Shown here piece by piece: positions 3,634-61,827 of a stretch of DNA of 64,000 bases. The stretch comes from Lepidodermella squamata (Eukaryota; Animalia; Gastrotricha). Below the pieces are notes generated by a model. It saw only the letters and a list, made by a program, of their open reading frames with translations, ran no database searches and had not been told where the DNA came from. The stretch spans positions 3,472,001 through 3,536,000 of the forward strand of contig JBLDXI010000013.1 in the NCBI GenBank assembly GCA_047495785.1. Reading direction: 5' to 3'. Each line of letters opens with the position of its first letter. Positions within the stretch are counted from its first letter, which is position 1. The position numbers were made by a program, and so were the translations under genes.

Positions 3634-5826
3634 TCATATTCCTTGAAGCGGTTTTCTCGGAACTGGAGATAGTCCAAATATCCTGGGCGTTTGAGCCTGT
3701 TCAACCCGCGGGTTAGGTATAACCAGGTTGCCGAACAGAGCCACAAAAGTCGTAGCAGAATAAAGCAATGTGATATATGAGATGGCTATGTAACGATTCG
3801 TAGTCGAACCGATAATGCCAATTATCATGAGTGACGCAGCAAATATTGCTCCTGCGTTGATTAATGCAACACTCAGCCACTTAAACTCAGTGTTATTTTT
3901 CAGCACCGGAAAGGTCCGCCTTAGCGCGTATGTCAGCAAAATCGAAGGGATCAGGGGCAAATACAGGAAAGCAGCGGCAACGAAGAACCATGTCGAAGAA
4001 CTCCGGGAGAAGCAAACGTTATCCAGAGTTGTGTAGTACGCATCGTCGTCACGATCGTAAACCGCGTGTGGAGTCACATTGACTAAACGATGTTCCATTG
4101 GATCCAAACAGAACCAAACTACCAATGTGATCACCACAGGAATAACAGGTAAGCAACATCGACCGAATTGACCTAGATTGAATTTCACTGCACGAACGAA
4201 GGAGTAATCGCAGCTTGGCTTCAAAGCGCGAATAATGAGAAGTTGATTCGAAAACGCCGAGTTGACAAAAGAAAGGCCGATAGCCGTGAAAACATGGGAA
4301 ATGTAACAAGCTGCCGTGGAAAGCGGGCTAGACTCAATCGCGAAGAAAATTGCTGAGACATTAAGGAGGATGCATCCCAATAGCGCGAAATACTTCATGG
4401 GAGTCCAAACAGAAATATGCTTTGATACAATCGGAGGTATAGCCATTAAAAGTTCGACAATCGTCAGCAAAGCAGCGATCGTGATGACGGCTATGAAATT
4501 TTCCCTTGGAACGTCATCGATCAGAGCAATTCTTGGAACCGTATCGTTAGGAGGCTTCCCATCAGCAGTTCGCCAGAGAGAGATCTCCTTCAATTTGTCA
4601 ACGACGTAGTCTTTTCCATTCTCGACATCGCCTCCGACTCGACAGTGGATGTCGTAGATCAGCTGGAGGGATGATGTCTCTAGAGACCAGACTGAAACAT
4701 ATTGCGGCTCATTGTCTAGCTCCAGCCTGGACGAATATTTCGTATAACCAACTCTCAGGCCTGTGTACTCTATCTTCCCAGCTGTTGCATTCGCCATCTT
4801 CATAACCTGCTCAGGCATCCTGCCGAAGTCTTTCAGAGTCATGTTATTAAGCTTAGAGAGATTGTTCTCAGTATCATGCAGGGTTATGACAGCTTGGAGC
4901 ATAGCGTCGTAGCACTGATGTCGTCGATGAAAGTCCGCATAGACCCTGTTTTCGGTATAATTGGCGATCATTTGGTCCAACGATTCTACTGTATGTCCTA
5001 TAGTAGAGGTTACTTTGCTCTCAAGAGCAAAGGACAGACCGCCAAGCCACAATGTGTACTTGAACTGCTCAAGAAGTACCGATTTTGGACATCCGGGTAT
5101 TTTAGAGTCATGTCGTAGTACACAGCTGTGATGCTGAATTGACGAAGTTGGTTCTGAAAGTACGTTACCATCGAAAGGTCAAGTTGGGCAACGGTTGAGA
5201 TAATCCCGATTCTTCGCCATTTTCCGACTTCTCGAATGAAGTTCAAATAGGAGAAGCCGACCAGCTCACCAGGCAAACGGGTTCGATATAGGTTACCGTA
5301 CAGCCTTCTGTTGCCTGTGAAGAAATCGGAGGAACATCCGTAGCTGATTTCGACCATATTCGCTCTTGCCACAGTTGCAGCATTGCCTTTGCAGCCTAAC
5401 AGATCATTGGGGAAACGACAACGTATTACGTTTAGTATTTATGAGCAACAAACCTGGACTACCCCGTGGACCAACTGACACAACTGACTGATACACTTGC
5501 CGCGAAATATTTGACGATGGGAAAATAGCTTCATTCTCGAACTTCTGTGAGTATTCAAAAAGTCGGCGAACGGCCATGTAACCTTCATTGCGGTCTTCAT
5601 CTTGGAAATCGATGGCGATTTCGTAGTTAGGCAGGATGTCTCTTCTTGAATTGACCGTGTCTGCTACGATTTGCATCGCCGTTCGGCAAATCATTGCATC
5701 ACCGGGTTTTGACTCCATGAATGGAATCTGGACTAAGACTAACAACTTTTCATTTTTCAATGCTACTAGTTGCTGAGTCAATAAGATAAGGGTCAGAAGT
5801 CTTGCCAATGGCATTCTTTTAAGCAT
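3634..5826 (-). pseudogene. GABA-B-like class C GPCR, paralog 2, frameshifted by an internal deletion
   Basis: Same exon structure (intron 5396-5453). At ~5100-5108 the sequence jumps from YYDM to PGCPKS: paralog 4 has 197 nt here and this copy has 7 nt. The net 190-nt loss is not a multiple of 3 and splits the ORF (5010-5372 / 3634-5052). Confidence 0.85.
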
Positions 5827-6399
5827 TTTCGGATAGACTTTCAAAGGTCAATATGCGAATAATGGAAAACATGGAAATCTTTGCAATTTATATTGGAGTT
5901 ATGAGTAGGATCATTATTTTACAGGTAATTAAATTCAATATGGCTTAGAACCAACTAAATGCCGTGTTTCGGGGGCGGTCGCAAGCTTCACCCCGAATCC
6001 TTAAAACGCACGTATTCATTAGTAGAAGAAACTTTTCTAACCTAATTTTCTGCGATACATAATATACATAACATTTTTTTGAAGTTCGGATCACCACGAC
6101 TGCTTTGGAAATAATTGTTCGTTGGACATTGGACACATTGGAGAATCACTTGGTTTTGAATTTCCACTGCTTAGCGTGTGAAGGAAGGTTAGTCCGCATG
6201 TTGGCTTGATATGAAACATGTTTTGTCGTTGGCAGTTGGTGTCATGGTGTATGACAAGCAATATATGCAAATTTTGTTCTCTTCGTCTCGATGGCGTTGA
6301 TTATGGTATATCAATATATGCATCCGCTTACCTCCTAAATTCAAAGATTTATTGTTCATTGATATCATATGAATAGGGGAGACGAAATAATTGAAATAT

Positions 6400-43275: not shown

Positions 43276-44272
43276 ATGTTTCGTGTATTCTGTTTCCTAA
43301 GTGTATTAGTCAGCCTTAGTTCAGCCACCATAGTGTTAGACTGCTATGACCATAAGGCAGAGCTGTTCGAATCGTGGAGCGCCCAAGCCCTTGGCCCCGA
43401 AACTTGCCAATCAAACTTCTTCGGCATCGCCTACTGTGTCGATTCCAGCGAAACATGCACTCTGAACGGAGGAACGCCGACCAAACGAGGCAGCTACGTT
43501 CCCGGCCAGAATCAAAGTTTCTCCACATGCTCGACGCCAGTTAATCCCCAGTGCTGTTTCAACGGCTTCGGAAGTTGCATGGGCCTATCTCTGAATTCAA
43601 CCGAAATCTACGGCAACTGCATGCAGCCGAGTTACTGCCCCCAAGCGACAGTCAACCCCAGCGGGGATTCCCCGTGCCAAGCGGGTTTGACATGTTGCGT
43701 CGACGATTCATCGAACCGTGATTACGTACCCTGCATTGACGAGTACGAAACCATGTTCGACAAATTGATCGTCCACGGCGATGCGTTCAATATAACCGCT
43801 AATCGGTTGAAAAACTTCCTGCCCTACTTTGGCCAGGTGTATTACCGCGAAAAATACCTGAACAATTTCGACAACGAATGCGAGCCGGCGAATTTCATGG
43901 CGATTTCAATGCAGTTATTGCGACTTTTTGCGATGGATCAAGCGTTGACATATGACACGATCATCGCAACCCTGAAGGCGCAACCCTTCTCGCAGTATTT
44001 GATTGAGGATTTGATGGAGATTACGCGGCGAGGTATCATTACACCGCCGGTTTTCGGCCGTTTCATGGGTAGGATGTGGCTGTCGACGGCTGGGACCATG
44101 GGTGGATCTTGCGAGAATTACCAATCAGCGGCTGTTAGTATTATTGGACAACCTTTCCCGTGTGACGACACGTGGCGGTCTTTGCAGGCGGATTTCGGCT
44201 GTAAACTTTCATTTACTTTCCTATTAACATATTTCCTGAGTTATTTATATTACAGGCCCAATTCCCAACTAG
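43276..44272 (+). CDS. Secreted protein: signal peptide, two Cys-rich (C..C..C..C..CC) repeats, helical C-terminal domain (possibly degenerate GH19)
   Basis: Long exon 43276-44200, intron 44201-44255, short last exon giving ...ADFGCPIPN*. The paralog at 56 kb ends identically. TATATAAA about 100 bp upstream. Confidence 0.8.
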
Positions 44273-45168
44273 AACTGGTCGAGCTAACTTTCCGATTGAT
44301 TCGAAAAGCCGTCGGAAAGATACGCCACAACATTTCCAAAATATAGGAATCATTGAGATAAGAAGAAGAATTGTACACACTGCTTCTTGGAAACTTCAAT
44401 AAAATAAAGCTCGTAATCTTTTCAATTCCCTTATTTCACTTTCAACGCCCATTCAAGATTAAAGTTATTTTTTTCATGAGAACATGTTCTAGGATGACAG
44501 GTGTCAGGTAAAACCTCTAAAACTTATTACGATATGCATTTTTTGGCGATAAACATGTGGGCCACTTTCTAATCAATATTGGGACACGAGTCTGTTGAGA
44601 CGAGGCGAGCCGAATACAAAATTATCTTGATATTTTGGAAAAAATAAATCCTTGTAGAAACCTGGAATCTTGGTCACTCAATATTGATTTCTATTGATTT
44701 TTTATTCCTAAAGCCTTCAATCTCATTTAATTAAAACCACACTTGATCTTACAAATAAGAAGAAAATTTGTTAACTGAAAATTCAGTACACTAAATTTGA
44801 AGCTAGACCAATGTTTTTGGGGTTGAACATCGCCGAAATAGTCAAACATCTATCAGCCGTTGAATTCCGTTTGAATGAAAAAGTTATCGACTGACGGTGC
44901 ACCAGATAAAGACAGAAGGCATGCTAAAAATAATAGTATTTTCCACGCATCTCATCGATCTTGCTTGCCATTTCGAAAACTTCGAATTGTTGGCGCAAAT
45001 GAGACACATTGTGTAAAATAATGAATATATAACGGCTGCGCATAGGTGATCGCACCAATAATCGCCATAATAAACCAGCCTCGCACCCCTAGCTCATCAG
45101 CTGACGTGGGTAGCCGCAGGAGGAGTTAAGGTAAAACAAACAGCGATCATTTCTTGTCCAGCAAAAGA

Positions 45169-48100
45169 ATGATTTTCAGATTAAGCAGCCTAGTAGTTAG
45201 GTTGAGCTTCTTGATCGGGCATGTCGACCTCATGCTGGGCTATGATGGCTTCTTTTCGCCGAAAAATTGCGGCAAAGACTATCGGCTGATAGCTGCTGAT
45301 TCTTTCAGGCAAATCAGCAACACTGACATTCGATCATGTGCCGACGCGTGTCATCAAACCGCTTACCAAATGTGCCGATCGTTTTCTTACTACCCGGCTG
45401 GGTCGACGTGCTGGCTGAACTACGGCCATACAAACGAACTGTGGGATGGCTTGGAGTACCAGAAGGGGTGGTTCTACTATCATAAAGCAAGTTAAGGTTT
45501 TTAAGCTCATTTGCAGGTCACCTCCCTAACGTTAGTTCCACTTTTTCATAAAAAAGAAAAACGAGCTAAAACGTTGCATCGTGGGGTCGCTTATAGAGAT
45601 CGCGTGCTCTACAAAAACAACTTTTTAAAAGCGCCGAATGTGACCAGTCTCGTGGCTTATTGGTTAAGCTCGTGACTGGTTGCACAGAGATCCTGGGTTC
45701 GATTCCCAGCCCTGCAACGTGAATTTTCTCAATAGAGAAATGTTACGGCCCCAACCCCAGGTTCACCTGGACAGCACGCGGATCATCACGCAGGCTAAAA
45801 ATAGGGGGGATAATATCGCTGGACCCCCTAACATACCGTGGATGGTTACAGGGGTGCCTGATAAGTCACATTTTTAGTCATTGGTTCCTGCCCCTCCCTG
45901 CGGTCGTAGAAGGAGAAATTGAACCTTAAATATTACAGACAAGAATATATTATGCTTTCTATCAGCTTTTGCAATAATGGATGAAGTGAAAAAGACCGGC
46001 ATCAAGCCTTCTGCATCAGTCGTCGCTATAGCAGATTATCCCAACCTTGGATAATCCTGAGAAAAATGCAAACTTCTCTCTCTGATTCATTCAACTTTCC
46101 CAATGCAACTTTCCCAATGCAAGTTTACTAATGTGTAAAACACGCACCAGGTGTGCACTTGAGGCGCGTGCGTGGAGAATCGCGTGAACATGCGCACGCT
46201 TACACTAGCAAATCATGTGACTACCATCTACACATCGCGCGCCAAATTAATCAAGATCAGGGGGCAGTTAATCTTTCATTCACCTCTACCGATTCTCTCA
46301 AATCCATAACAACTACCAAAACATTTCTATGGTTACGCCCCTGAATGGTGCATCTCTTTTCAAGGCGCATATTTTGGCGTAAATAGTGTACAAAAATTGG
46401 TTCACCTTGAAAAACGAAGCCCGAAAAACTCGTTTTTAACTACCGCACTGCCCGAAAAGTTAGTCAGCCTCGTAAAAAAGTCGGCCGCAAAGACCTACAC
46501 CGCAAACTCAGTTAAATTTACTCCAATTTTTCTGAACCCTCTATTTCAGGTACCGTATTTACTTGAATAAAGGCCGCATTCCGAATAAAGGCCGCACGCG
46601 AATAATCGCCGCAAAATTGTGTTATTTAAAAAAAACAATCGAAATAAAGGCCGCACGCGATTAATCAGCGCAGCTCTAACACGCGCGGCACAGCATCATC
46701 GCGAGAGGTGAAAATGTTTAAATTTTTTTTTCAATTTTCAAATATTTTTTTCGAATGACGCCGAAAATGCGAAAAATGACGCCGAAACCGATCCAAACGA
46801 AGAAAATGAAATCGAAATTGAGTGACAATAATGAAATAGACAAGTTACATTTGAAAAAAAATCGTTTTTTGGCTAAGAGAGGAAAATAAAGGCCGCACGC
46901 GAATAAAGACAGCGCTCGATTAATCGCCGCGTTCTTTTACCTTTTCTGAAAAATTAGGAAAATAATCGCCGCGGCCTTTATTCAAGTAAATACGGTAAAT
47001 CGATTCTGTAGAAAACGCTGGTGATGATAGAAATAAGTCTTCTTTAATGAAAAAGTGGGTAAAAGTGAGGTTCAATACTTTACCGTTATTAACATGCTGA
47101 TAGATAAATTTAAAGCTTAAAGCGATCCTTATTTAAAGTGAGTCTATTTATATCATCATTCTAAATTGCTGAATAAAAACTTTGAAACCGTTTGGGTCAA
47201 TTCCGTTTCACGGATGGTTTTCGGATGAAATAACCGGATAAAAAACATTGATCGGATGAAAAAGTGTTCTCCGTTTTTTTGTGTGCAGGAACCCCATATT
47301 CAATCGAAAGAGAACTGTTTAAAAGTTGTTCTGATATAAAAACCACAAAATTTGCCGAAAGTAGCGATTTGCGACATTTTGCGAACACATGTCGCACATG
47401 TTCCCTTTTTAGTTCGACCTTCAAAGCATTCTTGACAGTTTATTCACATTATTTTGCTGTTCCCCAGGAAGTTTACCAGGAGCCAACGCCATGCAAAGCA
47501 AATACGTATCACGGTTAGCCTGAATATCTCTGTTCATCCCCATTGCTTTGATTTTGATTTAAAAGACTGCAGCACTGTGGTCAGATTAGGTAAAGGACCT
47601 GGAAACTACTCGTTTCAAACTGAAATCGGCAGCAAGGTGTTCAACACTGAATGCACCTATCGAGCATCGGATCCGAATTATTTCTCAAGAGCAGGGTAAA
47701 ATTGACAAAAACATTGTTAAACTGAACCTCTATTATATTGGAAATTTTCTAGAAACCTCATAGGAATCAGTGACCGTGAGCAAAAAAATGATCAATAAAA
47801 TGAAATGAGTGAATTTTTCATTACAGTTGCTATGGTTTTCTTTCGGCGTTCAGGTTGGTTCTCTTGCTGATTTTTTCATGATCTTTTTATGAGCTATCTT
47901 GGTATTTTGTGACAGCTTTTAGGGTGTGTTGTTTTATTCACCCCGAATTTTCGGGTCGCCCACTTCTGAAGCTCACCTTGAAATGAAAATGTGGAGCTGT
48001 GTAGAGAACTTCATTACCCGTAAACCTCTGGTATTTACATCAAAAAATCTGTCATCCTGTGCCTACACCTGAGCTTCCCGAAATTCTGGGGGAATAAAAA

Positions 48101-50042
48101 AACACATCCTTATCGTTTGATAATATCTTTTTTATGGAAAAACCCAGCGGTTCAGGACTACGATTTCAGCACTAAATTATACTACGAATACAAATGGGGT
48201 ATTGATTGAAGACAATTCTATCACCTACTTTTATGAAACATCAATCGATAGGTTTCGCATCTAAGACCAACGCAACCAAATGGATTGGTCTTGAAATCGG
48301 CAGTCAACTTACAACTGGAGGTTTTCACGATTTCGCCTAGCATTCATTAATTCCTAAAAAAAATTTGAAACACAGATTTTGCATTGGTCGTTACAACTGC
48401 GCAAGCGTGGTGTGTGCAGCTGTCATCCAGTGGCGCCCAGGCTCAACTTGTCCTAAAAAGGGAAACATCCGTTGCCAACTGTGCTGTTTTCACCCACCGC
48501 CAGGGTCGTCTGATGCTGGCGACTCGATCGATCTGCGTATGCAAAGATCCAAACAGCAATAATCTCATTCTTTGCGGTTGCAATACGCCAGCAATGGGCA
48601 AGGTTTGAAAGGATTCCACTTATTCCTTGATGGTTTCACGTTTCTTTTTTTAGTATCGGTATGAGAAAAGGGGTGTCATAATGGAGATTTACGACCCTCC
48701 AATAAGCATGGAGCCATTGCGATATTGGACCTACAGCGGGACTTTAACGGCTAACATGCCTGTTCAAGCTCTACCAGCGGCAACACTGTCAGTGACAGGG
48801 TGGTCGAAGATGTTTCGTGAGTCTATTCAAAACGGTTATTGAAGTGCGGTTGCTTCAGCAATTTTCTATTTCCAGAACGTTGGAAAATAGTTTACCAAAT
48901 TTTTGTCGGCTATTATGACAAATACTGTTCGCTGACTTTCAACGGTCCGATGACTTCTGAGGACGAGGGATACAAAATATGCGAGCAGACCTATGGATCG
49001 GTATTAGAAATTCATTCCTTAATCCAGCGGTTCGCAAAGTGACAGAATTTCGAAAGTTCGATTTCGCACGCATGCGCATTGGCGCACGCGAGCTAAATCA
49101 CTCCGATCAGCCACTTTGATAGACGTTACATGGGTCAAGAGACACCAGTTTTTCTGTCATTTTTAGGCTATTTTCAGCCATTTTAAGAGAGCAAATTGCA
49201 AACATTTTTGCTCGCTTCGCTCGCATGGGGTCTCTCCGTTGACTTTACGAAATTAATTCTGTCTGTTGGATTGTCTAGCTTTTGGCTTACATTAGAGTAT
49301 TGTTGAGCATTTTTAGCGTCCCTGAATCTATATTAAAATCTCACAAGGTGCAGAAAATTTCAATCATAAAGTCACAATGTTTTACATTCAAAACCTCGAA
49401 CTCGCTGCCATGTGATTGATTGATTGATTCAATTCATTCACAATTCATTCAGTTATTTTGAGATTGAGCAATTTTTGTTTTGAAACGACTCAATCCACCG
49501 ATATTGACCTATTACATATGAAGATCCACGACAAACTTGGTACCATTCGCGGAAAACCAAGCAATTCTTGAAAAACACTCTGAAAATTAGTTCGTTTTAA
49601 TTGGCTAATTGAGGAGAATACAAGACGCAGGAGTGGCGTACCCAGGAGGTCCTGCGTGCGCCACTCTTGTGCAGCTGGGGAAAGGTATTTTCGAACCACT
49701 GCCTTAATCGTTTAATAATTATCGTCCGTGAAATACCTAGCTGTCGTCCTGGCCGAATACATGCGCTACTGTAAATCCTGGTGATATTTACTTCGATCAT
49801 TACGGCTACGGCACGCGATTCAATATAAGGAATGATCTAGGCGGTGGATGGTGGATCGGAACTAATTTCTTTGACACGTGGCAGTGTTGCTACACATGCT
49901 CGTGAGTGTTTTGCGCATTATTCTTATTCCAATGTTTCAAATCCTCTATGTTTTTTCTAGGCCCAATTATTATTATTACAACACTGAATCTTACGGGAAA
50001 TCTACTCGTGATTCGATGGTTATGCTCTACGCAGCTCCTTAA
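45169..50042 (+). CDS. PAN/Apple + fibrinogen-related domain protein with internal beta-trefoil-like insert, copy 1; 12 exons, GC-AG first intron
   Basis: Exon 1 PAN (CADAC..CRSFSY....TCWLN..W.YY). FReD motifs DCS..G..PGNY, MVFFRR, DFS....EYKWGF, WIGLE..QLT, SEDEGYKI...YG, GGGWW. All exons splice in frame and are conserved in copy 2. Confidence 0.82.
45645..45927 (+). mobile_element. tRNA-derived SINE in intron 1 of copy 1
   Basis: A box TGGCTTATTGG (45653-45663) and B box GGTTCGATTCC (45696-45706), followed by ~220 bp of non-tRNA body; absent from copy 2. Confidence 0.7.
46553..46995. mobile_element. Tc1/mariner(pogo)-type MITE
   Basis: TIR CCGTATTTACTTGAATAAAGGCCGC and its exact inverse; TA TSD; internal AATAAAGGCCGCA repeats. 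Confidence 0.92.
47922..48109. mobile_element. Tourist/Harbinger-like MITE
   Basis: TTA TSD; ends GGGTGTGTT..TTTATTC / GAATAAAAAAACACATCC; absent from the matching intron of copy 2. Confidence 0.85.
49025..49701. mobile_element. hAT-type non-autonomous element
   Basis: TIR CAGCGGTTCG / CGAACCACTG; perfect 8-bp TSD CCTTAATC (49017-49024, 49702-49709). Confidence 0.88.
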
Positions 50043-50967
50043 ATTACGTTCAACAGCGCGCCATCAATGCTTCGAAGTACCCACACACTTCGGATATAAA
50101 TAAAACTTTTATGAAAGTCCGATGTTTTCATGATACATTCGTCCCATAGGGAGAAACTGTTTTGTATTAGGCCCAGGCCTAATTTTAAAATTTTTATTTA
50201 CTTGATTAATTTGATCCCTTCGAATTTCGGCCCCAAAATGAACACGTGAGATTGTACGGCATGTACCAAATCAGTGGCGTCTCGACCCTTTGTAATCGCT
50301 AAACGTCGCGAGGCAAATTGCAAAAATAAATCAGTGTGAATGTTTTTTCTTGCAACGATCTGATAGATGTTACTTACAGAGAGACCTATCGGTTAGACGT
50401 AAAACGTAAAGCTGAGCATGCAAGTGCTGGGGCCTCAAATTTAGGGCGAGCGCACGGTTTGTCGGCCTCGTTTTAGAGGAATGACGACCTCGCGACTTGA
50501 CTATTCCAGGCGCGCGACAGGCAGAGGACGTCACGAGTTACTCTTGAAATCAAGCCGCGCCAGGTGCCATTTACTGTATTTTGAAACAGATACTTGGATC
50601 ACGAGTAAAGGCAGCGAACAAAGGCTCCACGTGGAATTATTTTTTGAACCGCTCATTAAACGTCATTTCTCAAGGTGTGGGGTAGATTAATATAACACTC
50701 ACGAATTCGATGCGCAAATTTTTTCCGAAGAATATTACCCTTAGAAGTTACCGTCGATAGGCTTTTTATTAGTCAGGTCGCGCTACACTATTGTTGTGTG
50801 TGCGCGCGACTGTGACTGTCACGGGACTCTTGCTCCGCGGATTTGTTAAATTGCCACGCGACGAATAAAACGTCGCGCGCGAGTTTGTCGCAGCTGTCGC
50901 ATATTTGTTAATCCAGCTTTAGTAAAGATCATAGACATAATTCAACATCAAATATTGGAAAAAACAA

Positions 50968-51894
50968 GGGAAGGATGAGGCGAAACTGGATTAATAAACA
51001 ATGGTTTTTAATCCGTGTCCAAGCACACAGAAGCGAGAAAAAGACATCGAAAAGTGTGTTTTACGAAAGTGCAAAAAATTGAAATTGAAAAAATCGCTCT
51101 GCATCTTTGCATGCAAAAGTATCGTAGAAGTATGCAAAAGACTCATCACCTGGGCCTCCGATTTTCGATCTGAAAATATATTCTTACTCGTCTCAATGAG
51201 TAGACCACGATAGGCTATTTAGTTTTGAAAATCACTCCAAAACTTTAATTTAAAAAATTGTCAAAGTTTCCGTTATTTTTGAAATATTTTGGCTATGGAA
51301 AACATTCGTTTTTCGTTTGATTTTTTGGCTAAATATGCGAAAAATATCACATGTTCGACCTCTCGCGACAGAGCTCGTGTTGATTTCGAGATATTTGAAT
51401 GAAAAAATTGCCCCGTCGAAATAAAAACTTCATGTTATGTAAATATAATTAATTTTTGACGAATTTTGATTTTGGTGTCTATTGTTTCAATCAATGTAAA
51501 GAGCGTTTTAATTTATTGGTGCCTGAGGTTCCCCATAACGAGAAATAAGCTGCGAAATAAGTAACGCCAAGTGAAACGTGTTTGCAAATACAGTGAATCA
51601 TGCAAAAAAGCTCAAAATTTCTGTTTTATAGGCAAAAATACCATAAAATTTCAAATTTCGCGCCAAATAAACATGTGTCAAGGTCGAATTTTCAAAAAAA
51701 TAGCCTATCGTTATGAAAAAAACGTGTTTAGGCGAACTGGAAATTATGAAGTTGTGGAAATCCGTGTTTCAATAGTTTCCCCTAAAAATCGATAAAAAAA
51801 ATCGATGAAATTTCGGAACACACTTTCGACGTCTTTTTCAAAAAATTTCTAAACACCAGATGGTGCAAAAATAATCCAGTTTCGCCTCCTTCCC
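50968..51894. mobile_element. Non-autonomous TIR element (Harbinger-like ends)
   Basis: GGGAAGGATGAGGCGAAACTGGATTA versus TAATCCAGTTTCGCCTCCTTCCC; TSD not clean. Confidence 0.75.
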
Positions 51895-53120
51895 TTAGTC
51901 GCGTTTTTCAATGTTCATTTCGCTTAATTACTAGTTCTTAAACGAGGGCCATGAAGCTCTGTTGCGTAAGGAGAGTTACACAATCGCTTCGAAATTAACA
52001 ATTTTACGCTACCGATGCGGTGGAAGCGAATTTTGATCAACATTATTTATTTTTTTTCGCAGTAATTCGTAGTTGTGCGTAGCATCGACACCGTTTACTG
52101 CCCATTAAAGGCATGAGCTATTTCGACCATTTTTTATCTAAATTTGACTCTTAAAAAAGGCGCAAGTATTATTATGTGTTATGTAATGTACCGAGGTCAC
52201 GCCGAAAGTGCTGAATTCGCATCCAATTGAAGGGCAAAGGTTGAGGCCTAACGTATGGATGAACGTGTGGTTCCAAACAAGTTTGGTATCGTAATCTTAT
52301 TTTTCGACGTATTCGCCGCTATTTTTTACGGAAATGCGCTGGCGAAATTTAAAGAGAGCGGGAAATTATTTTTGATACCGAATCTTTAATGCTAAGGTTT
52401 CGAACTGCCCACAAATTAATTAGGCCATGAATATCTTATTTTTATATATTTAATTAATCCATTGATAAATAAAAATTAAGAGTCGGCCAAAAGTTAGTCA
52501 GTATTTTCCAAAATTTGCATAGTATGTGAGTCCTTGAATCACCACCATCTCTCGCCCATCGAAATGATTATGCTAAATAAGTAATTTTGAAATTAATTTT
52601 AAGGTAAAAAAATTGGAAAAATTGTGCGGTTCATAACATTTTTGCCCGACCGAAAAATCAACGAGCCCTAGCTTGAATCACCATCGAATGAGACCATCGG
52701 AATTTTTTATGAGCTCAGGATAAAATATAATTTTGAAATGTATTTTAAGGTGGAAATTCTGATTGAATTAACCGGACGCCTCGCGCGTGGTGATTAGGTG
52801 GAAAATGGGAACAATTTAACGGTTAATACCAATATTTAACTCGCCGAAAAATCAAACAGCCATGAAGCGATCTTAACATTTTATTTACCAATTTACCATG
52901 GTTTTATTCAACTGTTATTGCGTAATTATTCAAATGGCGCGAGTCTCTTTTCGGGCTTGAGAAAGGGACGAGACGTCACATGGCACCATTGTTCGAGCCA
53001 CGGAGTTCGCTTCGAGACCCTAATCAAATTTAGGCACCTCGAGAGCCGCCTAAATTGGGTGATTGTGCTCGGACATGATTTCTGTGATCAACGGGAATAT
53101 TTAATCCTTAAACTGTGATT

Positions 53121-55060
53121 AGTGGCTTTTACACTGGCTTTTTTGCCAAACAACTTCAACGCGTTGACGGTTTAAACCTAATTAATAACTCGGCTTGTTG
53201 CGTAATAGCCGTTGCAAACTGCCGTCGTTTACACGCAAGGTTATATCGGTTGCTTAAAACTACGTTTAATAGAACTATAAAATGATTGAAAATGTGTACC
53301 TACATCAGGTATTTTTGATTGCTGCAAAAGTAATACCTAATTTTGATAACCCATAGGTTAAGAAAAATTTACATTATTTTCAAAAAAATTTCGGAGTAGT
53401 TTTGGGAAGCTACCAGAATTTTGAATTTTTGCTAGCACAGAAAAACTTGGCTAAGAAGTACTTTGCACTCCGTGGTGGCCAGTTGGACTGTAAATTTGTC
53501 ACAGCGATTTCCAATTCATATTCCGATAAAATTTCCATCATAAAAATTAGCTAAACCTTTGCAAAGCATAATTTATCCAGAAAATTGCACGGTTATAGTA
53601 CTGCGAGGATTTTGGTGTCATAAAATGCAGAAAATTCAGCAGAGTTAATATCCTATTTTTAGAAGAATTTTCCGCGTCCAGGTAAATTTTATCGCGGCAT
53701 CAAAAGAATGGTGACTCGAGCGGGAATGGTAAATTTCAACACGTTGACGTTAAATCGTGGTAGGACATAAGGGCGCAGACATAAGCGCGCAGACAAAAGG
53801 GCGCCGGACAAAAGGGCGCGAGGGCATAAGGGCGCTAAATCAAGACAAAAGGGCGCCGAGACAAAAGGGCGCCTGGACAAAAGGGCGCAGGACATAAGGG
53901 CGCCAGATAAAATTACCAATTACTTTTAGTAGTAGTTTATTTAAAAATCAATGTTCCGTCCAATACTAAGTATCAGATTGCCTAAAGACACGGGTATTTA
54001 CATTTAACAATTATTTGTGGTACAGGTGGTTATTAATTATTTTGCATGAGTCCTTAATTACTGAGATGACAATGTCAGGTAGGATTGACTGGGGCAGGTT
54101 GAACTTTTTGATGAATTCAGTTCACTTATTTGTCATTTTTTGTTATACTCATTATAGATTTGTTCATGAAAATTGAAAATACCTAGTAACACAGTTATAA
54201 AACTTGATAATAATGCTGCAATCGGAAATTGATGCGATTGTGAGTTTTATAAGATTTTATAAGATTTCCGAAGGCAAAATAAGCAAAATAAGTTATGATA
54301 AAACCCTAAAATCTACGTGATCGAGATTTATTATCATGCAAGAGAAGCAAACCATATTTTCAATCAATGACTGAATAAATTAAATCATTTAGCACAAAGT
54401 CATTCGAATCGAAAATTAATTATCTAGCACATGCCAAATGGCGTCTAAATAAGGGAATGGGTTTTCAAAGTCAAACAGATTATCCTTTAATGGGACTAGG
54501 GCTCTCAGGCGCTCGTCGATCAGCGGTAAATCGACCTGGGGATGAACCTGATTCGCGAAGGGGTTATATTTGCCAACACTCCGCATTTTAAAACAATTAG
54601 TTTCCTCTAAAAGCGTCGCAAAGCCATCGTTTTAAAAAATAATAACTAATAGGCCTTCGTTATACATAAAAATCAGGCGCCCTTTTGTCCCGGCGCCCTT
54701 TTGTCTCAGCGCCCTTTTGTCCCGGCGCCCTTTTGTCTGCGCTCTTCGGTCTTTCGCCCTTTTGTCCGGCGCTCTTTTGCCTTTCGCCCTTATGTCCGGC
54801 GCCCTTATGTCTCTCGCGCTTTTATCCGCGCCCTTATGTCATGGTACCCGTTAAATAGTGTTCACACTGCTATGCAACCTGTTTCAAACTGGTTGACGTT
54901 ATAAACGTGATTTTTAACACGTTAAGCAACCCCATCCGGGTGCCGTTAAAAAAACTTAACTGACCCATGTTTTTTAGGTGTTCACACCATCGGTTGAAAA
55001 CCGGTTGACGTTAATTACCCTGTTTTAAACTGAGTCAAAAAAGCCAGTGTAAAAGCCACT
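53121..55060. mobile_element. Non-autonomous TIR element with ATT TSD, hosting a nested foldback element
   Basis: TIR AGTGGCTTTTACACTGGCTTTTTTG / CAAAAAAGCCAGTGTAAAAGCCACT; ATT on both sides; ends resemble 40913-42000. Confidence 0.85.
53756..54848. mobile_element. Foldback-type element with inverted arrays of ~14-bp repeats
   Basis: About 10 copies of GACA(T/A)AAGGGCGC at 53764-53903 and inverted at 54676-54840; flanking direct repeat CGTTAAAT (53748-53755, 54849-54856). Confidence 0.85.
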
Positions 55061-55309
55061 ATTAAGTCAATTTTTTTGAAAAACGCAACTCTTGGTTTAC
55101 TTGGCCTCCAAGTCTCTGATGAATCAGCTGACCATCTGGCGCCCACGGCGTACACCCTTTTTCACGGGAGTGGGCGATCTCTACTGAATTATATCTATGG
55201 TAAAGATGTATGTTACAGCATCTTTATCAACCCTAATTACTTTCCTTGCACATGGTTCTTATCGTATCCACAAAAAGTTCAGTATATCTACTATCTACCG
55301 ACATGCCCG

Positions 55310-55690
55310 AAGTAAAACATGTTTCGAGGGTTGGGAACGTGCGAACGTCACTCGAAACTTCGAGGCTTCACTCAAGCAGAGGCGTGAGGAAAAGCTACGG
55401 ACTTTTCGCCCTCGGTCTGTGTGAGGTCAGATGGAATGGTAAAGAGTTTGCAAAGGGCTCTGTATTTCTCTATCTATCTTGGGGAGATAGGAATCAGCAT
55501 AATGCTGGCTGCTCTAGCGCTGATCAAATGGGAACCAGTCAACCAGCGCCTGTTAGTGGCAAGATTCCAGGGGCTTCACTGCAAAATCGCAAACCATCCA
55601 GTGCTACAAACCATCATCCAGTGCTCCTAAAAACGAGCATCGGAAGAGGCAAAAGACATCGTCTACGATATGATCCAAGCGCGAGGTAAT
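55310..55690 (+). mobile_element. Degraded RTE-like LINE AP-endonuclease fragment
   Basis: Across frames: GNVRT.LET, YGL.ALGLCEVRWNG, LIKWEPVNQRLLVARF, TIIQC - typical APE-domain motifs, with frameshifts. Confidence 0.75.
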
Positions 55691-55725
55691 CTCATGCCGC
55701 TCCCCGATCACCTAATGGGAAAACA

Positions 55726-55834
55726 ATTAATGGGAAAAAGTTTTACGCGCACACCAATTGTCGGATACGAAGTGCGCGCGCTCTCAACTCGCGCTCAAAA
55801 TGAAATGCGCGCGTAAAACTTTTTCCCATTAATT
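55726..55834. repeat. Short inverted-repeat element (MITE-like)
   Basis: AATTAATGGGAAAAAGTTTTACGCGC ... GCGCGTAAAACTTTTTCCCATTAATT. Confidence 0.7.
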
Positions 55835-55995
55835 TTTCGACGCGAGAACACCATATTCAATCGATAGAGAATTGTCTGACCTATATTTGTATGATATAGA
55901 ACGAGTAAAGAGTCTATATATCTGAACGGAGCCGGCCGAGATTTACGAATCGGAACGAGTCGAAGACGAGTGGAGATGAGTAAATCGAGTACGGC

Positions 55996-56460
55996 GGGTT
56001 GAAAAACTTCCTGCCCTACTTTGGCCAGGTGAAATACCGCGAAAAATACCTGAACAATTTCGACAACGAATGCGAGCCGGCTAATTTTATGGCAATTTCA
56101 ATGCAGTTATTGCGACTTTTCGCGATGGATCAAGCGTTGACTTACGGCACAATCCTCGCAACCTTGATTGCGCAACCCTTCTCGCAGTATTTGATTGAGG
56201 ATTTGATGGAGATAACGCGGCGAGGCATCATTACACCGCCGGTTTTCGGCCGTTTCATGGGTAGGATGTGGCTATCGACGGCTGGGACCATGGGTGGATC
56301 TTGCGAGAATTACCAATCTGCGGCTGTTAGTATTATTGGACAACCTTTCCCGTGTGACGACACGTGGCGGTCTATGCAAGCGGATTTCGGCTGTAAATTT
56401 CCATTTTTCAAATACAAATTTCCTAATTTTGTTTTCATTACAGGTCCAATTCCTAACTAG
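55996..56460 (+). pseudogene. 5'-truncated duplicate of the 43276-44272 gene
   Basis: High identity to 43805-44272 starts abruptly at LKNFLPYF; no signal peptide or Cys-repeat sequence upstream, where TE debris lies instead. Confidence 0.8.
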
Positions 56461-57223
56461 AACTGTTCAACCTAGCTTCCCGATGGATTCGAAAAGCTAC
56501 CAGGAAAATAAAAGGGGCAACATTTCCAAAAAATTAACAATAATTGAGATCAGAAAAAGAATAATAGGAACTTCTTGGAAAATTCAGCAAACAATAAAAC
56601 TCTTAATGTTTTGAATTTCCTTATTTCACTTTCAGCGCCCAGTCAAGATTAAAGTTAATTTTTTTCATGAGATCATGATGTGCTCTGAAGATGACAGGTG
56701 TCTATATAGTTAAAAATCTACAGTTTATTAAGCTCTATTTTGCAATATCTTATTTGGTGGACCTTATTTCTAATCACGTTTGATCTTACAAAAATGAGGG
56801 AAAAATGTGCAGACTTAAACTGCGCAGATAGTACACCAAATTTGTAGCTAGCTTTCTGCAACCAATGTTTTTTGGGTTTTTAAAATCTCCGAAATTGTCA
56901 AACAGCTACCAGCAGTTGAATTCCGTTTGAATAAAAAATTTATCGACTGCAGGTGCCCTAGATGTAGGATAACGGCATGCTAAAAATGCATGCTAAAAAT
57001 AACATTGTTCACACATCTCTTCGATCTTGCTTGCCGTTTCGAAAACATTCAATTCTTTGGTGGAAATGAGACATTGTGTCAAATTAACGATGCGCCTAGG
57101 TGATCGCACGAATAATAATATGAATAAATCAGTCTCGCACCCCGAGCTCATCAGCTGACATGGGTAGCCGCAGGAATAGTTAGTATAAAACCAACTGCGA
57201 TCAGTTCTCGTTCAACAAAAGGA

Positions 57224-60200
57224 ATGATTTTCAGATTGACCAGCCTAATAGTTAGGTTGAGCTTCTTGATCGGGCATGTCGACCTCATGCTGGGCTATGA
57301 TGGCTTCTTTTCGCCGAAAAATTGCGGCAAAGACTATCGGCTGATAGCTGCTGATTCTTTCAGGCAAATCAGCAACACTGACATTCGATCATGTGCCGAT
57401 GCGTGTCATCAGACCGCATACCAAATGTGCCGATCGTTTTCGTACTACCCGGCCGGGTCGACGTGCTGGCTGAACTACGGCCATACAAACGAACTGTGGG
57501 ATGGCTTGGAATACCAGAAAGGGTGGTTCTACTACCATAAAGTAAGTTCAGGTTTATAAGCTCCTTTGCAGGTCACGTCCCCAGAGTTAACTATTCTCCA
57601 AAGCCGTTTTAAAGTTGCATAAGATAAGTGAAAGTCGTGCGCGTTAGGTCCACTCATAGAGAAAAGAGTTACCTATTCTCTATGGGTTCACCTCTTCTTT
57701 AAGAAATTTGATGATGAAATGGGGCATGTTTCAATATCTGGTTGTTTTTATACCAACACAATACCATGCTTTTATTCTCTATTGATTGAATGTAACGAAA
57801 AACCAGTGTTAAGCTCGCGTTATGCACACGCAATAACGTCGTAGTCTAATAAACAATTTAGTTGGATTGGGAATCCAACTACATACATGTAGTTTAATAA
57901 GCAAACTTTTAAAAAACTAGTTTATAAGGCAATCGAACACAATTATTGCGCAAAACATTGCCTAAGAAGACAGGCTCAAGTTTTGTCCAATCAACTAGAT
58001 TGATAGTGTAAAACACTGTTGGAAATGCATGTTTGACTATTAATGAGCCGTATTTTAATAAATACGATATAAAAGAGACAGAACGGTCAAGAAAACCACT
58101 ACAGACCTTCTTCACGGTTGGAATCTCAACATTTTCCATTACTCGAGCCTCGAGCAATACTTAGCCATTTCATCCTAATTGGTGTATTGGATCAATTGTT
58201 GCCGAATATTAAACTAGGTTTATGAGCAAATTGGCAAAAAACTAGTGGGATTCCCAATCCAACTAAATTGCTTATTAGACTACGACATATATAATAATAT
58301 GGGTGCTTTTCACTATATTGATGTGCGCGAAATACCACAAGCCTGGTATTTTTGGGTGTGACTTTGTCCGACAACCAAGTAACTTTTTAGTCATTTTGGT
58401 CATTTTTTGGGTTTCGAGGATGAAATAACCGGATATAAAAGACATTAGTCGAAAGAAAACGTTCCCCCGTATTTTTGTGTGGAAGAACGTCATATTCAAT
58501 CGATAGAGAACTGTATAAATTGTGTTCTGATATGATATCGTTAGCGACGTTGAATAACTCGGATTTAGGCGTGTTTATATCCGGTTGAAGGGCCCGGGTG
58601 ACAAGGAAAACGCGGCTTTTCAACATGAATGAAGAGGCAAAAACAAAGACTTTTTACTTGTCACCTATCACCTCGAAATGGAAGTAAACAAGCCTAAATC
58701 CGAGTTATTCAACGTCGCTAGCGATATGACACCCGCCACATTTGCCGACCTTGGGGATTCGACATTTTGCGAACTCAAGTAGCAATTTTATGTTCCTTTT
58801 CTTGGTTCGACCTTCAAAGCTTTTTAACACTAAATTTACATTAACTTCTGTTCCTCAGGAAGTTTATCAAGAGCCAACGCTATGCAAAGCAAATACGTAT
58901 CACGGTCAGCCGGAATTTCTCGATATATTACTATTAGTCATACTTTTTCGATTCCAAGTAGATTGCAGCACCGTGGTCAGATTAGGGAAAGGAGCTGGTA
59001 ACTACTCGTTTCAAACTGAAATCGGTGGCAAGGTGTTCAACACTGAATGCACCATTCGAGCCCCGGATATCTACCCGAGAGCAGGGTATAATTTACAAAA
59101 CTATTGTTAAATTGAACCCCTATTGAACTGAAACTTTCTAGAACCCACATAGGAGTCAGTGAACGTAAGCAAAAAATGATAGAAAAAAAATGAATGAGTG
59201 CATTTTTCATGACAGTTGCTATGGTTTTCTTCCGGCGTTTAGGTTGGTTTCCTTGCCATTTTTCGAGATTTTTCATAGCCTCATGTAAATGATAAAAACA
59301 TAGCGGTTCAGGACTACGACTTCAGCACGAAGTCATACTATGAATACAAATGGGGTAATGAGTGAGAAAAAATCCAATTACCTAGTTGCATGAAACTTAT
59401 ACATCGAAAGGCTTCGCATCTAAGACTAACGCAACCAAATGGATCGGTCTTGAAATCGGCAGTCAACTTACAACTGGAGGTTTCCACGATATTGCTTAAT
59501 ATTGTTAATTCCAAAGAAATATTTAAACACAGATTTTGCATTGGTTCTCACTACGTCGCAAACGTGGTGTGTACAGCTGTCATCCAGCGGCGCCCAGGCT
59601 CAACTTGTCCTGATATCGGAAACATCCGTTACCAACTGTGCTGTTTTCACCCACCGCCAGGGTCGTCTGATGCTGGCGACTCGATCACTCTGCGTATGTA
59701 AAGATCCAAACAGCAATAATCTCATTCTTTGCGGCTGCAATACACCAGCGATGGGAAAGGTTCGAAGAATAAATGCTGCATATTCACTGATGGTTTCATG
59801 TGTTTTTGGTCCATAGTATCGATATGAGAAAAGGGGTGTCATAATGGAAATTTACGACCCTCTGATAAGCATGGAGCCACTGCGATATTGGACCTTCAGC
59901 GGGACTTTAACGGCTAACATGCCTGTTCAAGCTCTACCGGCGGCAACTTTGTCGGTTACAGGGTGGTCGAAGATGTATCGTAAGTCTATTCTAATTCTTT
60001 TGGTTCATTCGTCGACTTTCTATTTTCAGCGCGTTGGAAAATAGTTTACCAAGTTTATGTGGCATATTATGGGAAATACGGTATGCTGACATTCAACTCT
60101 CCGATGAATTCAGAAGACGAGGGATACAAAATATGCTCGCAGACCTACGGATCGGTATTAGAGGGTGATTCCCGATCGCCCAACATGTTACATCTAACCG

Positions 60201-61827
60201 CGCACTCGCTCAATTTATTCGCCCAACCAACTCGCCCAGCCTACATATTTAATAAATTTGGAATTGTTTGTGCGCGCACGCGTTATGTCTATTGCAAAGT
60301 GCGCGCAAGCGAAAAGCTGTTTATTGCCGTTGCCGTTGCTGGCGTTTTCACATTTATCACAAAGTTGAAACATTATTATTTTTGATTTCATAACTTCCAT
60401 CTACTTGTTGTTTCTAGCCGGGCCTGTAAAGATTGCAAGAACAAATTTGGCATCCATTATTTTTATTGCCCACCTTGCGCCAAAAAAAAAGACTGAGGCC
60501 ATTGAAAGAGCGGTTCAATTTTACTGTAACTCACCTTAATACTTTCGCGCGTTTAATTGCTCTTCATTATAAAAGTCCCGCCGCCTCATTAACAGAATTC
60601 TGGTAGGAAGTGATAGAAAAAGTCGAGAAGCGTAAACGCGGTAGGCCGCCGAAGAATAAACAGGCAAGCTTAGCCTGCGCCTGGGACGCCTAGAATATGC
60701 GCGGCCGCCCGACCAAGGCTAAGCTTGCTACAATGCCCTCATCCGCGGCGTCAAGTGGCCCTATCAGCGCACCACCAGTTGCCTCGCCGGAACCTCGCTT
60801 TCTAGTTTACCTGGATTTGAGCCACAATAACCTGTATCGGAAATCGGAAATTACAATATCGCAACCGTCCTCTAAGGCTAAGAAGATTAAGGTGGGGAGT
60901 TCCAGGGCCGCATCCGCTCAAGCTAGCCCCGCGCGACTCGTAGTTTTCACGGAAAGGAGTGCCGGCCGTTATAGTGCTCTCTCCGATTGCCGCCGGCGGC
61001 GAATCTTCTCTGACGCCGAATATGATCAGCCCAAATACCTTTCTCGACTGTAGTTTTGATGGATTTTAATACCAGGAAGAAAAGGGAGAAAACGGGTTTG
61101 TTTACCACCGCTGTTATTGTAATCGAAAGTCGTCGATCGAAGTAGTCGATCGAAAGGGTGTATAGTAAAGGCTATCGACGTATATGCCTGAGTTCAGAGT
61201 TTATTATTGCCCAGTACTAGAGCTCAAATAAACAAACACTGTGAAACATTGCGAAACATTATTATTGCATTTTCAGACGGAATCGGCAGTAGTTTTTGCG
61301 AAGTATTCTAGATAAATTATTGGCCCCTATTTGTGATTCCGAGTCTTAATAAGCGCGGTGTCTTGTATGCGTGTATTCTTGCGTGAAATTTAAATCGTAT
61401 TAATTGGGCGAATTGGTTGGGCGAATGAGCGAGCGCGCGGTTGGGTGAAATAAGTTGGGCGATCGGTATTAGAAATTCAATTCTGGTTCATTATATTTAT
61501 TTTGATTATACTTATTGATATAGCTGTCCTCATGGCCGAATACATGCGCTACTGTGAATCCGGGTGATATTTACTTCGACCATTACGGCTACGGCGTGCG
61601 ATTCAATATGAGGAATGATCTAGGTGGTGGATGGTGGGTTGGGAGTAATTTCTTTGACACGTGGCAGGGTTGCTACACATGCTCGTGAGTGTATTGCGCA
61701 CTTTTCTTATTCCAATGCTTCAAATCCTCCATGCGTTTATTCAAGGCCTAATTATTATTATTACAACACTGAATGGTACGGCAGAGCTACTGGTGATTCG
61801 ATGGTTTTGCTCTACGCAGCACCTTAA
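57224..61827 (+). CDS. PAN/Apple + fibrinogen-related domain protein with insert, copy 2; 12 exons
   Basis: All 12 exons match copy 1, splice GT-AG in frame and end ...MVLLYAAP*. Confidence 0.82.
58542..58720. mobile_element. Small MITE with TAG-starting TIRs (exact ends and TSD ambiguous)
   Basis: TAGCGACGTTGAATAACTCGGATTTAGGC and its perfect inverse; absent at the matching site in copy 1 (~47335). Confidence 0.8.
60163..61466. mobile_element. Mutator-like non-autonomous element with ~70-bp imperfect TIRs and AT-hook coding remnants
   Basis: CCGATCGCCCAAC..AACCGCGC..CTCGCTCA..TTCGCCCAACCAA.TCGCCCA is mirrored at 61404-61466; internal KRKRGRPPK and RGRPTK; flanked by repeated GATCGGTATTAGA. 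Confidence 0.75.

Follow-up and report, generated by a model that had tools for sequence, protein, structure and literature searches.

Proteins with fibrinogen-related domains (FReDs) form a major family of immune lectins in invertebrates, and the variety that has been described for them comes from the modules that stand in front of the domain, i.e. immunoglobulin superfamily (IgSF) domains, EGF, coiled coils, collagen or PAN. Here, we have analysed a stretch of 64,000 nucleotides from the gastrotrich Lepidodermella squamata (the window; contig C13:3472001-3536000, GenBank JBLDXI010000013.1, assembly GCA_047495785.1 with 121 Mb in 151 contigs) that carries two copies of a gene with a different predicted arrangement: a domain of about 131 residues is nested inside the FReD. 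The two genes are probably two of five intact tandem paralogs of a lineage-restricted family that encodes secreted proteins with a PAN domain and a FReD, and the most likely fold of the domain nested in the latter is that of a ricin-type beta-trefoil rich in cysteines.

The canonical secreted FReD lectins (PF00147) such as the ficolins, tachylectin-5 and the invertebrate single-domain FReDs have several properties in common with the window genes: the proteins are secreted, they contain the DC...C pair of the A subdomain, the Y.EYKWGF...WIGLE...LT core, the GGWW motif and a hydrophobic C-terminal strand, and their genes have expanded in tandem arrays, as is the case in other invertebrates. The window genes differ from these lectins by the approximately 131 residues that are nested after the LT helix, by the replacement of GGGW, by the deletion of the calcium loop with its cysteine, by a shorter C-terminal pocket and by exon pieces that are silent in Pfam. 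A PAN/apple domain upstream of the FReD has been reported for mollusc proteins, i.e. one fibrinogen-related protein (FREP) of Biomphalaria glabrata and some FReDs of Lottia gigantea (as cited in PMC7588048). Like the window genes, these putative immune lectins have PAN/apple before the fibrinogen domain; however, their FReD is uninterrupted, the Biomphalaria protein has an additional IgSF domain, and that account does not describe a nested domain (PMC7588048). The partner modules of FReDs have been reviewed as IgSF, EGF, galectin, C-type lectin and coiled-coil, all arranged in series (PMC8878817), and our literature search retrieved no account of a FReD that is interrupted by another domain. 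Rotifers have only 1-6 FReDs (PMC8878817).

A duplicated gene with a split fibrinogen-related domain

A self-comparison of the window identified the two gene copies as the result of a tandem duplication, with five conserved exon-carrying blocks that share 81-87% DNA identity. Copy 1 (45169-50042) and copy 2 (57224-61827) are both located on the plus strand, each consists of 12 exons, and they encode proteins of 473 and 471 residues, respectively; all introns have GT-AG borders, and there are no internal stop codons. Three further intact copies (copies 3 to 5) lie directly beyond the edge of the window. Thus, the tandem array comprises five copies, each with 12 exons, exclusively GT-AG introns and an open frame of 470-475 residues. 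The models were built from open frames, splice signals and the conservation among paralogs. An initial reading of the window, the first-pass annotation, had proposed a duplicated 12-exon gene that encodes a PAN domain and carries the insert on two dedicated exons, and we recovered the same exon count, the same start (45169) and the same stop (61827), a PAN match above the Pfam cut-off on the first exon, and the insert motifs on exons 8 and 9 of both copies.

In both copies, a signal-peptide-like N-terminus is followed by the PAN/apple domain and then by a strongly diverged FReD with the insert of approximately 131 residues. The start codon, the signal peptide and the PAN/apple domain are all encoded by exon 1, which ends with a GT donor in phase 1 (45169..45490 in copy 1) and matches PAN_1 (PF00024) with 30.4 bits at a cut-off of 21.4 (E 3.5e-7); its counterpart in copy 2 (57224..57545), again with signal peptide and PAN, is 96% identical. 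For the analysis of the FReD, which is spread over 10 exons, we used 18 Pfam-positive FReDs from the same genome as a canonical reference set to derive a local hidden Markov model (HMM) and profile. This HMM matches residues 176-229 of copy 1 (in the numbering of an 11-exon model, see below) with an E value of 6e-6, and a weaker collinear piece is found beyond the insert. When the insert is removed from a profile of 14 family members, hhalign yields one alignment of 121 columns to the canonical FReD profile that spans the excision point (Prob 97.4%, E 9.8e-12), whereas the match splits into two local alignments that flank the insert if the latter is kept. The FReD match after removal of the insert, which the first-pass annotation had put forward as a check, was thus not only present but improved by the excision.

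The details of the alignment agree with this picture. Both cysteines of the A-subdomain disulfide pair (DC ... C) align with those of the canonical FReDs, and the FReD core GFG...WLG...LT is kept in a derived form (YEYKWGFASKTNATKWIGLEIGSQLT), with the next strand following approximately 131 residues later. In the 18 canonical FReDs of the genome, the LT helix and the next strand are separated by 2-6 residues, in agreement with the earlier statement that FReDs normally have only a few residues at this position. In the B subdomain, the insert is accommodated by a surface loop that connects the LT helix to the strand behind it. At the level of the exons (with motifs and residue counts given for copy 1), the LT helix is encoded by exon 7 (48252..48320 in copy 1, 59411..59479 in copy 2), which reads GFAS...WIGLEIGSQLTTG, ends in phase 1 and gives the best match to the canonical FReD profile. 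The insert occupies exon 8 (48376..48602 and 59533..59759), which encodes 75 residues with six conserved cysteines and is proposed to cover the trefoil subdomains alpha and beta, and exon 9 (48654..48816 and 59817..59979), which encodes 54 residues and again ends in phase 1; both are conserved among the paralogs. With exon 10 (48876..49000 and 60030..60154), the FReD resumes (RWKIVYQI ... SEDEGYKIC), and this exon aligns to the canonical FReDs right after the excision point. Taken together, these data give good support to the predicted architecture, in which a PAN domain precedes a FReD that contains a nested domain.

The window genes are not the only ones with this insert. Protein and profile searches in the genome identified 20 insert-carrying loci in three subfamilies, i.e. 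13 loci of subfamily A on contig C13 (including those in the window), five of subfamily B and two of subfamily C, and together with the C1 gene discussed below the family has at least 21 genes. For three of the seven further subfamily A paralogs, automatic exon chaining gave usable models (two of them only from exon 3 on), and the remaining ones entered the alignments as exon pieces. The insert can be aligned cleanly across the three subfamilies, with conservation of the six cysteines. In subfamilies B and C, there are no introns at the insert borders, and the insert is contiguous with FReD coding sequence, with one intron at a different internal site. PAN_1 is also detected in subfamily B (25.2 bits, above the cut-off). 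In the subfamily B loci (L033-L036 and L014, on contigs C13, C29 and C40), the PAN exon is preceded by two or three exons of EGF type as well as by a module of about 280 residues without Pfam match, and their products are thus larger mosaics that end in PAN and the split FReD. One locus, L012 (C46:257000-265500, minus strand), lacks the first half of the insert that is present in its 98% identical twin L013 on contig C29; this copy may carry a deletion, may be a pseudogene or may represent a haplotig of the assembly.

Among the five tandem copies, the ratio of nonsynonymous to synonymous substitution rates (dN/dS) is 0.03-0.13 for PAN, 0.08-0.16 for the insert, 0.10-0.31 for the N-terminal part of the FReD and 0.13-0.44 for its C-terminal part. 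The insert is therefore the second most constrained region after PAN, and the former ligand-pocket region in the C-terminal part of the FReD evolves fastest, which fits either relaxed constraint or diversification.

These observations bear on the question whether the gene models might be artefacts in which unrelated exons have been stitched together, or whether the genes might be dead or unexpressed duplicates in decay. The models have been derived from the genome sequence, half of the insert is missing from one relative (L012), and two exon-sized pieces retrieved no relatives from the databases: a full scan of 1.84 billion representatives with a 180-residue exon of subfamily C gave no relatives beyond this genome, with three matches over short stretches of repetitive proteins that we took as spurious, and a word search with the 171-residue open frame of the C1 gene, in which only proteins of 94-299 residues were eligible, gave nothing. 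Both searches were made with exon-sized pieces only, and they cover eukaryotic proteomes thinly. On the other hand, the five tandem copies and further paralogs have kept all splice sites and an open frame despite dS values of 0.2-2, dN/dS is well under 1 in every region, the C1 gene has its exons in the same order and phases, and the contiguity of insert and FReD in subfamilies B and C excludes a stitching artefact. We therefore give hardly any credit to this explanation and prefer the idea of an intact, lineage-restricted family of PAN proteins with a split FReD. Since its domains are split over many exons and strongly diverged, this family is invisible to lectin surveys that are based on Pfam: the genome contains more than 150 canonical FReD matches to Pfam PF00147, most of them intronless, and none is at the window locus.

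The C1 gene and the nature of the insert

The most informative relative is a single-copy gene on contig C1 (L054, C1:629000-638999, gene at about 4108-5906), which was found by a search with the family profile (E 2.8e-7). It encodes a signal peptide, a PAN_1 domain (28.7 bits, over the cut-off) and a FReD that harbours an insert of 132 residues at the same point as the window genes. In contrast to the window copies, its FReD is recognized by Pfam: Fibrinogen_C matches one exon before the insert with 29 bits at a cut-off of 22 (profile positions 55-89), and again after the insert with 18.8 bits (profile positions 145-176), where the calcium-loop motif FSTYDRDND is intact. The local FReD HMM covers positions 2-86 and 92-172, split by the 132 residues, and after removal of the insert it detects one FReD domain (60.6 bits, E 8.6e-21). 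The insert of this gene is homologous to that of the window family, as judged from the comparison with the family insert profile (hhalign Prob 96.7%, E 3.2e-10), and a reciprocal protein search from the C1 gene reaches the window exons with an E value of 5.6e-5. Moreover, the C1 gene and subfamily A have two introns in common: a phase-1 intron at the 5' border of the insert, which splits a G^D codon, and a phase-0 intron halfway through the insert. Thus, the C1 gene shares with the window genes the domain order, the insertion point, two intron positions and a homologous insert; it differs from them by being single-copy, by its near-canonical FReD with FSTYDRDND, by a well preserved third trefoil subdomain and by fewer introns.

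It is the insert of the C1 gene that points to a ricin-type fold. Its third subdomain has Ricin_B_lectin as the top Pfam match (17.9 bits, E 0.0036, below the cut-off of 29, for a piece that holds one of the three subdomains). The first insert exon reaches a score of 0.95 in the Atlas language-model search, where beta-trefoil families (Ricin_B, RicinB_lectin_2, CDtoxinA, AbfB and HA-17) account for almost all of its named neighbours. The best sequence matches in the PDB, which are not significant, are B chains of rRNA N-glycosidase entries; these chains are the ricin-like lectin subunits of type-2 ribosome-inactivating proteins. Finally, hhalign places the insert in register with four ricin domains from the same genome over 102 columns (P 0.0096, score 20.1), as compared to 15.1 for the best of 40 shuffled sequences and 9-10 for the reversed and FReD controls. 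Because the insert of the window genes is homologous to that of the C1 gene, we read it as a ricin-type trefoil as well, and it is likely that it represents a diverged member of this fold. The ricin-like character that had been suggested from the cysteine pattern therefore received indirect support from the homologous insert (with Pfam below the cut-off, Atlas and hhalign, the latter above all 40 shuffles), whereas it did not appear in the Pfam, profile and repeat tests on the window copies.

Ricin-type (R-type, CBM13-like) beta-trefoils (PF00652, PF14200) resemble the insert in their size and in the repetition of a cysteine, a hydrophobic strand and a second cysteine followed by an aromatic triplet and G.I, and the Pfam, language-model and profile signals of the C1 homologue point in the same direction. 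By eye, one aromatic triplet can be assigned to each subdomain as a candidate for the QxW-like motif of a threefold repeat of about 40 residues, i.e. AVF, YRY and TGW in the window copies and PWW, YQF and FIW in the C1 gene. Domains of this type usually stand alone or in series with other domains, and the insert of the family differs from them since it is nested in another lectin domain, has an unusual C.C...C.C cluster and is too diverged for Pfam in the window copies. In a trefoil, the N- and C-termini are adjacent to each other, a geometry that suits nesting.

Several observations weigh against the interpretation that we favour. With respect to Pfam, neither Fibrinogen_C (PF00147) nor the ricin families matched any exon piece from the window copies or from subfamilies B and C, and none of the 31 matches of a genome-wide Ricin_B scan is located at the family loci. 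The insert of the window family does not align significantly to the four local ricin domains (hhalign E 0.17), a self-comparison of its profile gave no significant internal repeat, the window insert exon reaches Atlas scores of only 0.79-0.83 with several beta-trefoil families among the weak leads, and the Atlas search gave nothing for the second half of the window-family insert. Even for the C1 gene, each of the ricin signals is below its threshold when taken singly. AlphaFold models of two open frames that each read through one in-frame intron, computed with an alignment of paralog exon fragments, have pLDDT (predicted local distance difference test) values of 34 and 37.5 and show strands only; a Foldseek search with the better of these low-confidence models gave no usable match. 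Searches of the PDB by sequence with the subfamily C exon and with the insert profile yielded nothing useful. In addition, the one public sequencing run that covers the region consists of genomic DNA and has no splice joints, the splice junctions are predicted from sequence logic and conservation, and the lectin activity of the family is a predicted function.

Some of these points would also be expected if the nested module were real but had another fold, i.e. if it were a family-specific, cysteine- and beta-rich elaboration of the FReD with another role. None of the 20 core family members has a Pfam ricin match, the family insert has neither a significant profile match nor an internal repeat, the AlphaFold models are of low confidence, and the third subdomain of the window copies lacks both cysteines that are present in the C1 gene. 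However, this alternative would leave the four concordant beta-trefoil signals of the homologous C1 insert unexplained; moreover, the size of 131-132 residues and the all-beta prediction suit a trefoil, and beta-trefoil families are among the weak Atlas leads of the window exon itself. We consider a different fold rather unlikely and thus keep to the ricin-type trefoil in the following.

Proposed origin of the nested domain and remodelling of the FReD

In subfamily A, both introns that flank the insert exons are in phase 1, and the two exons therefore form a symmetric 1-1 module. This is the signature that would be expected from exon shuffling into a phase-1 intron. As a consequence of the flanking phases, skipping of exons 8 and 9 would keep the frame and join LTTG to RWKIV, resulting in an uninterrupted FReD. 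It is therefore conceivable that the two exons are a cassette, and that isoforms with and without the trefoil are produced; this idea is compatible with a nested trefoil, and it agrees with the exon phases of the models and with the continuous alignment of the insert-less sequence to canonical FReDs. Yet in subfamilies B and C and in the C1 gene, the insert is continuous with FReD coding sequence at one border or at both and hence constitutive, and the insert is more constrained than the FReD that surrounds it. A cassette exon pair in the window subfamily thus seems quite improbable.

The FReD has been remodelled in the window copies. In the alignment, neither the calcium-site loop (F.T.D.D.D ... 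C) before GGWW nor the P-domain disulfide is present, as the loop is deleted together with its cysteine in all five tandem copies; the first-pass annotation was correct in noting that the Ca2+ loop is missing, as the motif is absent from both copies in the window. In addition, a longer segment takes the place of GGGW, and about 10-20 residues are missing from the C-terminal pocket region in comparison with canonical FReDs. In copy 1, the remodelled P region is encoded by exon 11 (49741..49901), which contains RFNIRNDLGGGWW and CCYTC and aligns to the GGWW region with deletion of the calcium loop, and the shortened C-terminus by exon 12 (49961..50042), which ends with VMLYAAP and the stop codon according to gene model and alignment. 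The corresponding exons of copy 2 are located at 61524..61684, with RFNMRNDLGGGWW, and at 61746..61827, with the stop codon. The other family members differ in the state of the loop: it is degenerate, with one Asp and no Cys, in the subfamily A member m3086 and in subfamilies B and C, and it is intact apart from the Cys in the C1 gene. Since the C1 gene has the insert together with FSTYDRDND, the insertion preceded the loss of the loop. Moreover, three canonical intronless FReDs on contig C24 (L028, L029 and L032; Pfam 127-143 bits) are also devoid of the D-x-D...C loop before GGWW, indicating repeated loss of the loop in this genome. Given the loop in the C1 gene, its degenerate form in m3086 and in subfamilies B and C, and the three canonical FReDs without it, the loss in the tandem array is a putative late event that is derived within the family; it seems to be unconnected with the acquisition of the insert, and it also occurs outside the family.

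Based on these data, we propose the following scenario: a trefoil module would have entered the FReD loop by exon shuffling into a phase-1 intron, and at this stage the FReD would have been near-canonical and would have had its calcium-loop motif, as is the case for the C1 gene. Later, the FReD of the window subfamily would have been remodelled by the replacement of GGGW, the deletion of the calcium loop and its Cys and the shortening of the C-terminal pocket. The products may be soluble multivalent glycan or pattern-recognition proteins in which binding would be achieved mainly by the conserved trefoil and/or the PAN domain, and the eroded, fast-evolving FReD may serve as a scaffold or as a diversified secondary surface. 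It is tempting to speculate further that these proteins are an undescribed class of animal pattern-recognition lectins with a repertoire of more than 20 genes, in which the shuffled trefoil took over glycan recognition from the FReD, a swap already suggested in the first-pass annotation, with the latter left, after the loss of its calcium site, as a fast-evolving scaffold or secondary surface, and in which exon skipping might toggle the trefoil in the window subfamily; this is a possibility that we regard as doubtful.

If the trefoil is confirmed, more than 20 genes would have kept, by purifying selection, a lectin-type domain inside a FReD. This would be new, and it would represent a route to diversity that is different from the addition of modules in front of the domain. 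The family would also illustrate clearly how a domain can be inserted by exon shuffling, and one genome would hold both the likely intermediate, i.e. a canonical FReD with the insert, and the derived forms, i.e. an eroded FReD with the insert.

Remaining exons and neighbouring sequence

Between the PAN exon and the LT helix, both genes have five short exons. In copy 1, exon 2 (47472..47513) encodes a short linker with one Cys; it has AG and GT borders, and its frame is kept in the paralogs. Exon 3 (47566..47695) encodes the FReD A subdomain with the DC...C pair; it aligns to the start of canonical FReDs, and its donor is conserved in five copies. Exon 4 (47753..47775) is a mini-exon of 23 nucleotides; each of the five tandem copies contains it as a conserved block of the form AG...GT[AG]A. 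It is followed by exon 5 (47827..47853) with the strand AMVFFRR, the counterpart of WTVIQRR, which has an ACAG acceptor in five copies and corresponds to a VxMVFxRR motif that is present in all subfamilies, and by exon 6 (48148..48198), which encodes the FReD B subdomain (D..F....Y.EYKW) and matches canonical FReDs with hhalign and HMM. In copy 2, the gene model places exon 2 at 58863..58904, exon 3 with the A subdomain, which is 6 nucleotides shorter than in copy 1, at 58962..59085, the mini-exon at 59142..59164, exon 5 at 59216..59242 and exon 6 at 59304..59354. The peptides that had been quoted in the first-pass annotation were all located in the models, among them RFNMRNDLGGGWW in copy 2 and RFNIRNDLGGGWW in copy 1.

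Two junctions allowed alternatives. An 11-exon model with an acceptor at 47810 was rejected upon comparison of the five copies, as this acceptor is found only in copies 1 and 2. The 12-exon model was adopted because the mini-exon, which restores the frame in all five copies, and the conserved ACAG acceptor keep the frame in each of them. At the junction of exons 1 and 2 of copy 1, a GC donor at 45486 in combination with an acceptor at 47468 is equally open.

Upstream of copy 1, a single-exon open reading frame of 356 residues (43276-44346, plus strand) has a signal-peptide-like start, many cysteines and no Pfam match. The C-terminal half occurs again 5' of copy 2 (55999-56460, plus strand), indicating that the open reading frame was partly carried along in the tandem duplication. 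Intron 1 of copy 1 contains some 450 nucleotides (46540-47000) that recur in inverted orientation 3' of copy 4 (L010, 5111-5563) and have weaker counterparts in L013 and L014. This stretch looks like a dispersed repeat or a transposon fragment, and it helps to account for the length of intron 1 in copy 1, which is about 2 kb.

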